Assembly (NCBI GenBank): GCA_964035545.1
Contig: OZ037768.1
Location: forward strand, 23,345,319 to 23,409,318
DNA: 64,000 nucleotides
Direction of reading: 5' to 3'
From: Bugula neritina
Taxonomy: Eukaryota > Animalia > Bryozoa
The position numbers and the translations under genes are program-made. Shown piece after piece: positions 1 to 58,605 of the stretch (its first letter is position 1; each line of letters opens with the position of its first letter). The notes under the pieces are model-generated. The model saw only the letters and a program-made list of their open reading frames with translations. It was not told the origin of the DNA and searched no databases.

Positions 1-976
1 TATCGCCCTAAACCATACGATGTCTTAATTCCTTAACACTCCTGCAGTTCTTAATTCACACTGCCACACAAAAATAACAAAGCAGCAAACTTCTTAAAAG
101 ATACCCTGGAAGTCAATATATAATACAACATACTTAAAAGCATTCCAAAGTAGGCAAATTATACTTCTTCAAAACTCTAAAGAAAGTGATCTGGCAAACT
201 TTACCAAATCAATGCCTTATTGAATGGCACCATACACTAAAACACATTGAACTGCTAAGATAATTCAAAGTTTAAAACCGCAGCAGCACATACAGATTCA
301 AAGCTATCTTTTACTTACTTCTGATGAGATTGACAACATTTTCCACTGCCGAGAAAACAACAGAATTAAGCATATTGAACCAAATTCATGCTTCAGGTTT
401 TTATAAGAATTGGTATCCATCTATATAATCAAAAACTTGTGATAATTACAAGTTATTCTACTAGAAACTTAAAACTTTGACAAGTATAAATTCAAAATCT
501 GCATGACGTTATACCTGGTTATCATGTCTAAGTTGAGCTTCTATCTTCCTTCTACTGCTACTCAGTTCAGTCCAAACAGTTCCAACTTCTCTCTCCATGT
601 GTCTGTTGAGTTCTTCACTGACTTTCTTTCTGTTAGCTAAGAATTCTTCCTCAAGCTGGTCATACTTGACTTTTATAGCAGCCAACTAAACCAGAAGTTT
701 ACATAATATATAGCAAGTGGCCAACCGATGATTAAAAGTAGGTAAAAGTTTACGAAACTTGACGTTAGAAATAATTTCTCTAGTTACTTGTATTACCTAT
801 TATTAACCTATTATTAACCTAGTATTAACCTAGTATTAACCTGCTATTATCATTTTACACAAAATTCCAGCTAGTTAAGCCAACAAGGTTATTGCTCAAC
901 TTAACATAGGTGTAATACAAGTCAAATCTATTTCTCGTTTTAGGTAACCAGAAATGAAGCAAAGACTTTTTAAAAG

Positions 977-1072
977 TATATATATATATATACATATATA
1001 TACATATATATACATATATATACACACACACACACACACACACACACATATATATATATATATATATATATA
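977..1072. repeat. Compound (TA)n/(CA)n microsatellite
   Basis: Directly visible; source of spurious YIYI/HTHT ORFs. Confidence 0.95.
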
Positions 1073-1109
1073 TGCAAACAGTCACCTGTTGATCACGTTG
1101 AGTGTGAAG

Positions 1110-53900: not shown

Positions 53901-55106
53901 TTATCTTCTTTTTGAATTCCAGACTGTTCGAAAAACGTAGTGCAGTGTCGTATTCCTAGTAATATGTGTCGTAGTGAATAGATTGATAAAGAACTTACAT
54001 AATCTTTTGCTAATCTACGATGAGTAAAGGACGAGAAAGCGCTGTTGTGACGTCATTTTATAGCGATGCAAGTATTCATCTTAACAAAGAAGGGAATTCC
54101 CCGTCATCCATAATAATTTACTAACTAAATTCGCAGACTCACCGTCAGTTCGGTGGATGTTTTTATACTACATCAATACATGCTAACTGAACCATTAATG
54201 GCTCAAAGCTTCAAAACTAATTATACTGTATTATTTATGATGAGAAATATTATAATTTTTGTCTAAGATTCTGCAATTGCTCCAGGCTCATTTCAATTTC
54301 ATTTAATAAACTTCTCCCAAATTTCAAAGTGAAACTCAAACTGAGTGAGTGAATGAGTGAATACGTGAAGTTAATCAAATTCAAAAATTGTTATCACTCA
54401 AGGCTGAAAAATCAAATGTTAATGACAGCTCATCAACGATTACATTTTGGCTTATAATTTTTACTACTTCGTGCTCTAAAGTAAAATTTGACTTCCTTTC
54501 AATTTCATTTTTTAACTTTGATTTTTACTCTAATCATTAATATTTAGTTTTTTTAAGTTCTCAATCACTTTTGTCATTTGGTGTGGTTGTAATGCTTTAT
54601 TCATATTCTTATTGATCGTGATTGTTGATGAATAACAATTAAGCTAGTTAATAATTTTGAGCATATCTTAAAACTAATATAGGTAGTCGTAATACTAATA
54701 AATCATTAAATGATATTTAATAATAATTGTATATTATTAATTATAACAGTGCTATGTTAATAATAAATTTAATATCACTTTCATTTTTACTATCATTTAA
54801 GATATTGATGTTTTTAATCCTATTAGTAGAAGTCGGAATTCTTTTACAAGACAAAAGTATCTAGCAAAAATATAATAATAATAATTATATATACTTTTGA
54901 AGTGCATTTATATAAGTAAAGCTTTTTTCTTTCTCTTCTCTGTAGGTGTAGGAAATTATGTATAACTCTTATATATTCTTACAGTTACCATAACACTTCA
55001 TTAACTGAAAAGGGAGGGGGGGGAGGCGGATCATTATTTCGAAGTGAATGAAATCTAACTAGTGATCTCAAGTTGAAATCTATGCTTCAGATTTGTGAGG
55101 TCAAAC

Positions 55107-58100
55107 ATGGCTGAAGCTGGAGCAGATGGACAGACTCAGTGTGGGTTTTGTTTTCTTCAAGAAGGTTTGGAAGATCCCAAATCTCTACCCTGTGGTCATG
55201 TTCACTGTTTACCTTGCCTTAATGGTGATTTTGGTGTTAACAATATGCTGAGATGTCCTTGGTGTGGGTGAGTTATATTCTATCAGCCTATTTCACCAGT
55301 TTATACTGTTGATAGCTGAATAACACAGCCAAATAATTTTTGCTTTCATGGTTGTTTTCAATGTGTAAAGTATTAGATTTTGAGTGTGGAGAGTTGAAAC
55401 TGTGATGAATATGTTATGTTATGAATAGCTGTTAACACAGTTTCTGTCATACATATAGTGTAAGTATAATGTATGCTGTGTTCTGTCTCTCAGAGTGATA
55501 TGTAATGTGAGTATAGAGAGTCTACCTTCTGCTAACATGGGAGATAATTCCACACCTTGTGACGTCTGTATGAAGAAAGGAGAACAGGATGTACTAGCAG
55601 TAATCTACTGTACCGTGTGTCGTAAACTCTTCTGCAGAAAACATGAAGAGGTAGTTTTTTGTTTGCTTTTATTCTTGCATTAAATTTCAAAGGTTTCAGC
55701 TTTAAAATTAAGCTCACTGGGCATTCAACTACAAACATTAAAACGAGTTTCTATATTTACTTGTTATAGCATCATGATGTCATGTTTGATGACCACCAAA
55801 AGATGGCCATGTCTGACTACAAACTAAAAGCTAAAAGACTGGAAGCAAGAGTCTGTCCTAAACATAAAGGACAAGCCTTATCTGTGGGATGTAAAGCATG
55901 TGTTCAGCTGTTTTGTGTGCAGTGCCTATCTGAGACCAAGTCTTGCAGTGCTGGTAAGTATCTATATACCTGTGTTATAGTACCTACTAAGATCTAATAA
56001 TCACTGTGACTGTAGTCACTATGTATATACTAACTGATACTTTGTTAGTAACTTGCTAAAGATATCAATATTAGGCTCAGTATTCTCATTATAACTGTTT
56101 GATTTATATACAGATTCAGAGCATGAGGTAGTGAGTCTAGACGCATTGATTAGGTACATCACAGATATAAATAGTCTGATTACTGCAGAAGAAAAAATGT
56201 CTGCCTTCTTTAAACAAATATCAAAAACTGTATCAGACTTTGATACTGAAACCAGCTGTTTGCTGGAAATGCTTCACACTCAGCGTGATCAACAGGTGAC
56301 TGGTATCTATTTTGTTTACCAAATGATAACAGCTGAGTTATTGAATCAAAGGGTTCTTCATTGAATTCTAAACTTTGTAAGTCTGTTTGAGATAGCTTTG
56401 GGATCTACTTACTTCATTCTTTTCTTTACTTCTGGTTTAGTTGGCTGCTATACAACTCAAGTATGACAAACTTGAGGAAAAATTCTTAGCTAACAGAAAG
56501 AAAGTCAGTGAAGAACTCAACAGACACATGGAGAGGGAAGTTGGAACTGTTTGGACTGAACTGAGTAACAATAGAAGGAAGATAGAAGCTCAACTTAGAC
56601 ATGATAACCAGGTGTGTTATATAGTACAGTCTGTGTGTTTGTTTGCCAAATTTCATATATGCGTTTGAAGAACTGGTGTGTTACTATAACTGTTAATTAG
56701 ATAGAGCCAACTTTTCATAAAGCCAGAAATCTGAGTTATGTCTAGGCTTCAGTTGTAAAAAATTAAATAACAGGAAATTATAAAGTAATAATTGTTCTTA
56801 CAAGCTTTAACCTTCTAACTTGTTATGTTATCACAGAAATATTGAGTTATATACAAGTCTAAGTTAGTTAAACTTCTAACTTTTAATAAAATCTCAGATT
56901 TCTAAAATTTGATTTATAATCTGTCAAATAATAGCTGATGGTGTGTAGACTTGTTAAATTATTGTTTTATGTTGTTTGCAGTTGTGTAATAAAATAGATA
57001 ATATTTCACAGGTGGATCTGGTTGAAGGATATAAAGATATTAAAGAGAGAATACAGAGACTTAGGTCTGTTGAAACTCCTAATTTAGAACTGCGTGATGC
57101 CGTGTCTCTAGAGGTCAAAGGTGAGTTAGCATGGTCAGTCAAGAGAATTTTATTCACAAAAAGTTTTTTGTCTAACTTCTAGATTTGTTCTAAAATATTT
57201 GCAAGATATTTCTATAATATTATATTTCTACCTGCAGAAGAGGCTAGAGATGTAGAAGTAGAAATATCGTCAGCTGCAGACATAAATATTAGCTCAGTTC
57301 ATGGAGTCAAAACATATTTTGCTGCTAAATCTTTCAAACTCTTCAAGACCATCAGCGTTTCTGATGGTTGCTCTTCTGTCTGTAGCTATGGAGGTAACAC
57401 TTACGTTGGGCTCCAGCACAACAGTGGTGGGATAGTTAGAATAGATGAAGAATTTAATATTACTAGGTTAGTTACTATTGTTGGAAGTGTAAGAGCAGTG
57501 ACAGTGTATGAAGATAAACTCTATGCTTTGACTGCTTCCTACATACAAAGCAGAAAAACACGCATCATACAGTGTCAAGTAAAAGTATACACTCTTGATG
57601 GTAATCAGGTGACCAGCTGGCGTCATGAAGATGAGAGTGAGGCACAAAACAAACTCACAGTCATTAATGATCAGGTTGTCATTCCTGATAGAAGTAACAC
57701 AAGGATCACAGTTTACTCTCTTGCCGGGAAGGTAGTAAAGCATATTCCATGTTCACCATTTGATCACTATGATGCTGCTATATGTGCAGCAGACAGCCAC
57801 TGTGTAGTAGTTTCTAACTCTACCCAAATATTTAAGTTGGACCTGACAACAGAGAAAGTCATCTGGACATGCAAGGATGTGTCTAACCCACAAGGTGTGA
57901 TCTGCTATAGAAGTAAATACATTCTTGTGACTAACCGCAGCAGTAAAACTACTATCTGGGTACTGGACGTAAAAACAGGTTAGTGAACAGAAAGTCTGTG
58001 CATGAGTAGGGTATTATCATGTATTCACTGCTCAGCTCTGTTTTCATATTTCAATTATATTTAGTTTGATTATCATAGTTCAGCTTACACAGATTATTCT

Positions 58101-58605
58101 TGTTATAGCCTAGGTCTGCATCTACAGGTCACACTTTGGTTTCACAATTGATCGCTGATACTAGTTGGGGCGTTGAATATCTTCTGTTTAAGAAAATATA
58201 CGATACTTATAAAAGCTTGTAACCTGCAATATACTGTATATAAGCTGTAAATATAGCTTAATTGAAAGGTGTACATAGCGTAGCAAAATAAAGCCAAGCT
58301 GAGAGCGTTAGTGTTGCAGTTCTGGTAAAGAATCCCAAACCGGAAGTAAAGCTCATGTTTTCAGATATTCTTTAATTCAAGCTCACTGGCAAACCTATAC
58401 AACTCTGTGTTGTTTCTATAAAGTGTCTTCCATGTATTCGTCTGCAATATATCTGATTACGTCACTACCTGTTTTAGGTAGACTCTTGTCTGAGATATCA
58501 GATGATGAGGAGAGAAATTCTTCATCAGTGTATGATCTAGCAGTTTCTGGGGAAACTTTAATTGTACCCAGATCTGGAAAAGTGCTGTTCTACCAGCTGA
58601 ACTAA
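55107..58605 (+). CDS. TRIM-like E3 ligase gene copy D, apparently intact (610 aa), compact
   Basis: Exons 55107-55267, 55494-55650, 55770-55953, 56114-56295, 56441-56611, 57012-57120, 57238-57978, 58478-58605; total 1833 nt, open frame, GT-AG introns. Confidence 0.92.

Follow-up and report, generated by a model that had tools for sequence, protein, structure and literature searches.

In TRIM5 and the finTRIMs, positively selected surface loops lie in the B30.2 recognition domain. Group 1 TRIM proteins, which include the developmental TRIM-NHL proteins, are typically conserved and of low copy number; the fast-evolving behavior of the SPRY-containing group 2 of vertebrates was reported to be lacking in fly, worm, and Ciona (Sardiello et al. 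2008, PMC2533329). In the Pacific oyster, ten TRIM genes are among the loci associated with survival of infection with ostreid herpesvirus 1 (OsHV-1) (PMC9437489). By analogy, this link makes an immune role for lophotrochozoan TRIM expansions plausible, rather than proving one for the bryozoan family described here. That family is represented by four paralogous TRIM genes (copies A to D) in a 64,000-nucleotide (nt) stretch of the genome of Bugula neritina (GenBank contig OZ037768.1, positions 23,345,319 to 23,409,318), which we call the window.

The TRIM-NHL proteins (TRIM2, TRIM3, TRIM32/Thin, TRIM71/LIN-41, Brat, and Mei-P26) resemble the bryozoan proteins in having a RING finger, one or more B-boxes, a coiled coil (putative in the bryozoan family), and a velcro-closed six-bladed propeller, and the C-terminal domain matches them best, whether compared by profile (E values of 6e-4 to 3e-2) or by fold (template modeling [TM] scores of 0.64 to 0.74). 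A filamin repeat is absent both from TRIM32/Thin and from the bryozoan family. Unlike the TRIM-NHL proteins, the bryozoan family has no Pfam NHL repeat, is massively expanded, occurs in tandem, and evolves rapidly on one propeller face. With group 2, including the TRIM5/6/22/34 cluster, the finTRIMs, and btr, it shares tandem lineage-specific expansion, birth-and-death evolution including pseudogenes, and a conserved RING–B-box–coiled-coil (RBCC) part coupled to a C-terminal recognition domain with indels in its loops. That domain is B30.2/PRY-SPRY in group 2, whereas here it is an NHL-like propeller, a fold of the group 1 type, in a bryozoan host. TRIM5 and the finTRIMs act in antiviral defense, a role for which the bryozoan family is a candidate. 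The TRIM2/3-like genes of molluscs, so annotated because of their similarity to these proteins, are likewise lophotrochozoan TRIM genes present in many copies. The family studied here is a separate, bryozoan-centered subfamily, because the named full-length relatives that we looked up were all from Watersipora, with no mollusc protein among them. Its evolutionary pattern matches group 2 behavior on a group-1-type fold, and the family would be a propeller-based counterpart of the fast-evolving TRIM proteins.

On balance, we favor the reading that the locus is an expanded TRIM-NHL-like cluster in which a constant E3 module is joined to a diversifying propeller face that serves as a recognition surface. 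The evolutionary description itself, comprising an expanded family, a homogenized RING exon, a constrained core, one fast face, and birth-and-death turnover, is well supported.

Four paralogous TRIM genes in one window

Copies were found in the window by tblastn with the exon open reading frames (ORFs) of D, the most compact copy, and exon limits were set by flank-inclusive alignments and motif-anchored boundary calls. Searches and fold predictions were run exon by exon; spliced coding sequences were used for frame checks, alignment, and calculation of nonsynonymous (dN) and synonymous (dS) divergence. The tblastn matches and splice-bounded gene models established the four-copy TRIM array that a preliminary description of this DNA had proposed: four paralogs of one 8-exon gene of ~610 amino acids within 58 kb. 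The coding exons measure 161/157/184/182/171/109/~738/~130 nt, all splice sites are canonical AG/GT, and the domain order is RING, B-box1, B-box2, putative coiled-coil region, and propeller. Copies C (38662-50959, plus strand) and D (55107-58605, plus strand) have intact spliced ORFs of 609 and 610 amino acids, respectively, and are the only copies demonstrably intact in this haplotype. Copies A and B are arranged head-to-head, A on the minus strand, with 1,066 bp between the two ATG codons. Copy A leaves the window after exon 5, its exons 6 to 8 lying beyond the window start, so that three propellers could be compared. Apart from transposon insertions, the reading frames are open in all four copies. 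The strand of A, the breaks in A and B, and the synonymous identity of exon 1 had been missing from the preliminary description.

The C3HC4 ligands of the RING (C12, C15, C29, H31, C34, C37, C50, and C53) are present in all four copies, and the zinc-ligand pattern is invariant in 14 of 14 exon 1 sequences. Pfam RING models matched over their full length at scores below the cutoff (best, 24 bits versus 27; E value of 3e-5). Exon 3 passed the cutoff for zf-B_box (26.8 bits versus 24.1), and a subthreshold match of exon 2 to the ANCHR-like B-box (E value of 5e-4) pointed to a B-box1-like finger. Exons 4 to 6 (~155 amino acids) had no Pfam match and occupy the position expected for the coiled coil. 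Pfam gave no hit to a filamin/ABP280 repeat, and just ~80 residues separate the coiled-coil exons from blade 1. There was also no Pfam hit to SPRY or PRY in the window exons or the Watersipora relatives, and no signal peptide or membrane segment was found in the exons read. These exons therefore encode a TRIM protein whose divergent propeller is NHL-like and is not preceded by a filamin repeat; TRIM32/Thin is the nearest type.

A large bryozoan family

A word search with exon 7 returned 53 clusters that were 48 to 80% identical, all of them ORFs from two Joint Genome Institute (JGI) samples and all with the exon structure of the window copies. The samples are presumably B. neritina, as judged from contig names carrying AY690838, the GenBank accession of the mitogenome of that species. 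An exhaustive profile search gave 579 clusters at 50% identity with E values up to 1e-3, 183 of which had E values up to 1e-30. The named full-length relatives that we looked up are proteins of the bryozoan Watersipora subatra, annotated as "uncharacterized" or "TRIM2-like" and spread over six chromosome-scale scaffolds; they have the same architecture and ~29% identity in the propeller. The closest contigs were 87 to 91% identical to the window copies over 0.5 to 2.4 kb, including noncoding DNA, a level that would fit either a sibling lineage or close paralogs.

The preliminary description had allowed for unexpanded 1:1 orthologs of TRIM2/3/71. The family proved to be large (at least 53 exon 7 clusters in the word search and 579 in the profile search), and 1:1 orthology was rejected on the marginal NHL profile E value (~6e-4), the 579 clusters, and the six Watersipora scaffolds. 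That these genes form a large, lineage-specific bryozoan family of TRIM proteins, predicted E3 ubiquitin ligases, is well supported. A search of metagenome contigs with the exon 7 alignment gave 303 pattern matches, none of which was confirmed. Our literature searches found no paper describing a TRIM expansion in bryozoans and nothing specific on NHL-type TRIM expansion in bivalves.

A predicted NHL-like propeller at the C terminus

The Pfam NHL profile (PF01436) had no match at E values up to 1 in exon 7 of B, C, and D or exon 8 of D, and none at E values up to 0.01 in seven full-length Watersipora relatives; the propeller drew only weak generic propeller hits (PQQ_2, DUF5074, and WDR36). When a profile of 54 exon 7 sequences was compared with the PDB, the NHL domains of Brat, TRIM3, and Thin were matched at E values of 6e-4 to 1e-3 and that of Mei-P26 at 3e-2. 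The best five matches were all NHL domains, at marginal E values (6e-4 to 1e-3) to which WD40 propellers came nearly level.

An AlphaFold2 (AF2) model of D exon 7 (mean predicted local distance difference test [pLDDT] score of 80) was all-beta, with five four-stranded blades, and superposed best on the NHL domains of Brat and Thin (TM score of 0.64). Exon 8 aligns to strands A to C of an internal blade and therefore supplies the sixth blade. For a Watersipora relative, the C-terminal domain was modeled in full (pLDDT of 88). This model had six four-stranded blades and a velcro closure of the N and C termini by the N-terminal strand, and its top Foldseek hits were the NHL domains of Thin, Brat, TRIM2, and TRIM71 (TM scores of 0.69 to 0.74). 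Sequence identity to the NHL structures is 12 to 17%. These models place at the C terminus a divergent β-propeller of NHL-like type, with six blades, which Pfam does not recognize. The earlier identification of a propeller thus held, with AF2 and Foldseek placing it in the NHL type, and the NHL repeat profile of Pfam did not hit it.

Variation is focused on one predicted propeller face

Most replacements among the window copies fall in exon 3 and exons 6 to 8, with dN values of 0.07 to 0.27 for exon 3 (B-box2) and 0.18 to 0.25 for exon 7, and in-frame indels are confined to exons 7 and 8. Exon 5 is the second most conserved exon (dN of 0.03 to 0.05). The dN values and the placement of the indels thus agree with the earlier account of a similar exon 5 and a variable B-box2 and propeller, and the peptides quoted in that account (GLRYS/GVQHHSGG/GLQHNSGG, TDSYVQSRKTRILQY/SSYNSQMFW, and DEDRLFSARISFSV/NEERGSST/DEERNSSSV) were all found in the alignment.

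The top face of the propeller was taken to consist of the B-C and D-A loops, assigned from the predicted strand order and general propeller topology. Column entropy over 54 sequences was 1.60 bits in the predicted top-face loops, compared with 0.96 in the strands (Mann-Whitney p = 2e-4) and 0.80 in the bottom loops (p = 4e-5), and the majority of insertions fall in or next to the predicted top loops. An even scatter of variable sites with dN/dS well below 1, an outcome that the preliminary description had considered, was not what we observed: the variation is uneven and focused on the top loops, although the averaged dN/dS is still below 1.

Selection was analyzed in the exon 7 DNA of 13 paralogs, three from the window (B, C, and D) and ten from contigs. 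When changes were counted by parsimony on a maximum-likelihood tree, dN/dS was 0.65 overall and 0.50 in the core, the latter significantly below 1 (p = 3e-13). The ratio of nonsynonymous to synonymous changes differed between top loops and core (odds ratio of 2.1, p = 1e-5), and in the closest pairs, for which counts are small, dN/dS was 1.2 to 2.5 in the top loops versus 0.33 to 0.38 in the core. For the site test of model M2a against M1a, we used our own implementation with F3x4, in which the proportions among branch lengths were kept as in the nucleotide tree. Twice the difference in log likelihood (2dlnL) was 68.4 for all 246 codons and 34.5 (p = 3e-8) with gap-adjacent columns masked; in the masked run, omega2 was 2.9 for 16% of sites, and the mean posterior for the selected class was 0.35 in top loops versus 0.09 in strands and bottom loops. 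With three segment-specific trees, 2dlnL was 23.6 (6 degrees of freedom, p = 6e-4), and nine data sets simulated under M1a gave likelihood ratio test (LRT) values of at most 0.81. The window's own exons 6 to 8 (B, C, and D) yielded 2dlnL of 11.35 (p = 0.003), and the RBCC exons of A to D, analyzed as a control, gave a nonsignificant value of 3.7 (p = 0.16). These results are suggestive of a class of propeller sites with an omega of ~3, concentrated in the predicted top loops. The candidate sites correspond to residues 16, 76, 82, 134, 136, 154, 215, 216, 218, and 233 of D exon 7. The RBCC part and the propeller core are under purifying selection.

The segment trees of exon 7 disagreed with one another: contig L005 grouped with L007 in one segment, with L003/L006 in the next, and with L010 in the last. 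Paralogs therefore recombine (or undergo gene conversion) inside exon 7, and this exchange may itself generate diversity. Recombination among paralogs is a known source of false positives in site-model tests.

A near-invariant RING exon

Alignment of the 161 nt of exon 1 from the ATG to the GT donor showed, as had been reported, that A and D are identical and that B and C each differ by one base (G>A in both, resulting in Val>Ile in C). There were no synonymous differences over ~34 synonymous sites in any of the six pairs (Nei-Gojobori method), compared with dS values of 0.07 to 0.73 in exons 2 to 8 of the window copies, and introns 1 and 2 are 72 to 91% identical between copies. The conserved tract runs from 6 nt before the ATG to ~30 nt into intron 1, and the nearest neighbor of a copy shifts along the gene (A and C are 100% identical in the 53 nt on the 5' side, B and D 91% identical in intron 1, and A and B 90% identical in exon 3). 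Among the JGI ORFs, exon 1 formed two clusters at 90% identity (10 sequences, 80 to 98% identical) versus 53 clusters for exon 7. In more distant relatives, exon 1 was again the slower exon: its dS was 0.37 in paralog L014, which carries ~9 synonymous exon 1 changes, versus 3.5 for exon 4 and 1.3 for exon 5, and 0.08 in L012 versus 0.89 for exon 3.

This pattern is read most simply as recurrent gene conversion, by which exon 1 evolves in concert, added to purifying selection; constraint at the nucleotide level may also contribute. Because the synonymous sites and the start of intron 1 are constant as well, gene conversion explains at least part of the constancy of the RING. The constant E3 module of the preliminary description therefore stands in that the RING exon is near-invariant, but not as a product of functional constraint alone. 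Two other explanations were considered and rejected: protein-level constraint as the sole cause, since synonymous sites are identical too, and synonymous sites frozen across the family, given the changes in L014.

Transposon insertions and features of the locus

Coding exons of A and B are interrupted by insertions, a hAT-like DNA transposon in A and probably another DNA transposon in B, and such breakage points to turnover by birth and death (Table 1). The hAT-like element in exon 4 of A has terminal inverted repeats (TIRs) of 16 to 17 nt, CAGGG[T/A]TGTAGTGGTA, and is flanked by CTTCACAC, the 8-bp target duplication (2931-2938 and 1102-1109). Its excision in silico gives an exon 4 of exactly 182 nt, and contig L009 carries the empty site, being contiguous across the insertion point. 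At one TIR end of the element lies a cryptic GT donor that keeps the frame and would yield an exon of 179 nt rather than 182; copy A may still be spliceable through it. A copy of the element that is 76% identical is present in a related contig (L010:26-428).

The 20.5-kb insertion in exon 8 of B is flanked by a target duplication, GAGATATC, at 16338-16345 and 36851-36858, and has CAG...CTG ends with subterminal AGTATCTCGT motifs in inverted orientation. It is AT-rich and contains a long interspersed nuclear element (LINE)-like reverse transcriptase (RT) remnant at 25352-26308 and a long (ACT/AGT)n-rich stretch at 27.3 to 29.5 kb; no transposase ORF was found in it. The 8-bp duplication and the ends suggest a hAT-like insertion, which may be a single giant element or a small one enlarged by nested insertions. 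The two halves of exon 8 join in frame to give a normal terminal exon ending in VLFYQLN, and contig L008 is contiguous across the insertion point (empty site). The string DEDRLFSARISFSV of B lies beyond the insertion, 20.5 kb from the remainder of exon 8.

Retroelements are found in introns. The element in intron 1 of B has long terminal repeats (LTRs) of ~355 nt that are 100% identical, a GTAT target duplication, and a GC content of 52% versus ~31% in its surroundings. The element encodes a protease and the zinc-binding motifs of gag (zinc knuckle) and integrase (zinc finger), with no reverse transcriptase found; it is likely to be internally deleted and to have inserted very recently. Intron 4 of C measures 7.7 kb, versus 145 bp in D, and is swollen by a pol remnant with RT, RNase H, and integrase across fragmented ORFs; no LTRs were found flanking it. 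In contigs L001 and L002 as well, gypsy-like genes adjoin TRIM exon 7.

The flanks of the genes also differ in extent of similarity. The 53 nt immediately 5' of the ATG (5148-5200 on the minus strand for A and 38609-38661 for C) are 100% identical between A and C and unalignable with B and D. Because homology among all copies starts just 6 nt before the ATG, the copies may differ in promoter or have an unseen 5' exon. On the 3' side, ~0.4 to 0.8 kb beyond the stop codon is repeated after B, C, and D at 75 to 77% identity (36851-37652, 50785-51807, and 58492-59255), and the duplication unit therefore takes in the 3' flank. Introns 3 and 4 of A hold long microsatellites, (AC)n and (AT)n/(AC)n, at 4047-4230 and 950-1090. 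The window has a base composition of ~30 to 35% GC except for two GC-rich blocks, and its short exons with AG/GT boundaries, microsatellites, and retroelements are eukaryotic traits. Scanning the window for Rfam families and for tRNA genes gave no hits.

TABLE 1 Exons of the four TRIM copies and mobile elements within them (window coordinates)
Feature	Position	Strand	Remark
A exon 1 (RING, 161 nt from ATG)	4987..5147	-	Identical to D
A exon 2 (B-box1)	4603..4759	-	
A exon 3 (B-box2)	4290..4473	-	
A exon 4, 5' part up to transposon	2931..3096	-	
hAT-like non-autonomous DNA transposon in A exon 4	1110..2930	-	1,821 bp, TIRs and target duplication
A exon 4, 3' part with original GT donor	1086..1101	-	
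A exon 5 (coiled-coil region)	515..685	-	
B exon 1 (RING)	6214..6374	+	One G>A, penultimate base
LTR retrotransposon in B intron 1	6483..11838	+	Paired LTRs and target duplication
B exon 2	11960..12116	+	
B exon 3	12234..12417	+	
B exon 4	13164..13345	+	
B exon 5	13883..14053	+	
B exon 6	14662..14770	+	
B exon 7 (propeller blades 1-5)	14914..15651	+	
B exon 8, 5' part	16324..16345	+	
20.5-kb insertion in B exon 8	16346..36850	.	8-bp target duplication
B exon 8, 3' part with stop codon	36859..36991	+	In-frame join with 16324-16345
C exon 1 (RING)	38662..38822	+	One G>A, Val>Ile
C exon 2	39054..39210	+	
C exon 3	39349..39532	+	
C exon 4	39706..39887	+	
Degenerate Ty3/gypsy-type pol remnant in C intron 4	41845..46143	-	Bounds approximate
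C exon 5	47543..47713	+	
C exon 6	48549..48657	+	
C exon 7 (propeller)	49382..50110	+	
C exon 8 with stop	50823..50959	+	
D exon 1 (RING)	55107..55267	+	
D exon 2 (B-box1)	55494..55650	+	
D exon 3 (B-box2)	55770..55953	+	Pfam zf-B_box, 26.8 bits
D exon 4 (coiled-coil region)	56114..56295	+	
D exon 5 (coiled-coil region)	56441..56611	+	
D exon 6 (linker)	57012..57120	+	
D exon 7 (propeller blades 1-5)	57238..57978	+	AF2 pLDDT 80
D exon 8 with stop (blade 5, strand D; blade 6, strands A-C)	58478..58605	+	

Alternative explanations

The diversifying receptor with a constant E3 that the preliminary description had put forward is partly supported: the architecture, the expansion, and the loop-focused variation speak in favor. 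Several points weigh against such a recognition surface. The averaged dN/dS is below 1 everywhere (0.46 to 0.71 for exons 7 and 8), and the top-loop value obtained by counting, 0.87, is not different from 1. Our own implementation of the site test fixed the branch proportions, and the recombination present can inflate its result. The top face was assigned from predicted strand order and topology rather than from coordinates, and Pfam detects no NHL repeat. With two of the four copies broken by transposons, part of the variation may be decay. Several of these points would be expected if the locus held decaying recent duplicates undergoing neutral birth-and-death, with weakly constrained surface loops and no receptor-like function. 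This explanation, which we regard as unlikely but not negligible, is in keeping with the transposons in coding exons of A and B, a top-loop dN/dS indistinguishable from 1, a divergence of exons 3 and 7 similar to that of introns, and the capacity of recombination to fake a signal of positive selection. It is harder to reconcile with frames that are open in all four copies aside from the insertions, with the significantly reduced dN/dS of the core, with the contrast between top loops and core in the closest pairs, and with the preference for M2a over M1a, which persisted after masking and with segment trees and was not reproduced by neutral simulation. Furthermore, the bottom loops are conserved like the strands, so that loop status alone does not explain the variability.

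Somewhat more doubtful is the possibility that these are canonical TRIM-NHL proteins, RNA-binding posttranscriptional regulators that have multiplied for development (e.g., cell-type or zooid differentiation) and whose top face alters RNA-motif specificity. The nearest structures by profile and fold are indeed RNA-binding NHL domains (Brat, TRIM71, TRIM2/3, Thin, and Mei-P26), and several positions in or next to the top loops are basic and conserved, as in PDRSNTRI and YRSKY. However, the NHL similarity is marginal (E value of ~1e-3), and developmental TRIM-NHL genes are typically conserved and low-copy (PMC2533329), whereas the bryozoan family numbers hundreds of divergent members and includes tandem arrays, copies broken by transposons, and putative sites with omega of >1. 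A role in allorecognition, with a polymorphic, fast-diversifying intracellular E3 family acting in the fusion/rejection response of a colonial animal, seems improbable to us. Known invertebrate allorecognition determinants are mostly surface molecules, and the exons read encode neither a signal peptide nor a membrane segment. Allo-incompatibility occurs in colonial animals, bryozoans included (PMC8195603). The locus appears to vary strongly between lineages, in that orthologous-looking contig relatives differ by 9 to 13% over kilobases and are without both transposon insertions, but this divergence may instead simply separate species or paralogs.

Proposed function and implications

We read the locus as a young, transposon-rich cluster of four paralogs from a bryozoan-specific TRIM E3 family. 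From known TRIM and NHL biology, we infer that the RBCC module would act as a constant, dimerizing E3 effector and the top face of the propeller as a ligand-binding surface, as in Brat, TRIM71, and other NHL domains. Diversification of the top face would then reflect recognition of fast-changing targets, such as the proteins or RNAs of viruses or transposons or non-self of another kind, and recognition would lead to ubiquitination or sequestration of the target, in parallel to TRIM5 and the finTRIMs. By the same analogy, the family may have an immune, antiviral, or anti-retroelement role.

A bolder proposal, which we consider possible rather than probable, is that bryozoans, independently of vertebrates, turned the TRIM scaffold into a repertoire of variable intracellular receptors. 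Such a repertoire would comprise hundreds of genes, with the top face diversified by positive selection and recombination among paralogs and the E3 exon kept uniform by exon-specific conversion, and would serve in restriction of viruses and transposons or in allorecognition. It would also represent a propeller-based convergent counterpart of TRIM5 and the finTRIMs.

Fast-evolving TRIM proteins have so far been viewed as a vertebrate innovation linked to the SPRY domain (PMC2533329). If the reading favored here is correct, the same design of constant effector and variable sensor would rest on a different fold, the NHL-like propeller, in a lophotrochozoan lineage. This would be a case of convergence, and the family would offer candidate genes for innate immunity or self-recognition in a phylum whose immune system has hardly been studied. 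A further point, visible in a single gene, is that conversion limited to the RING exon coexists with diversification of the propeller. Even on a modest reading, these genes constitute an unrecognized propeller family that Pfam leaves unclassified.

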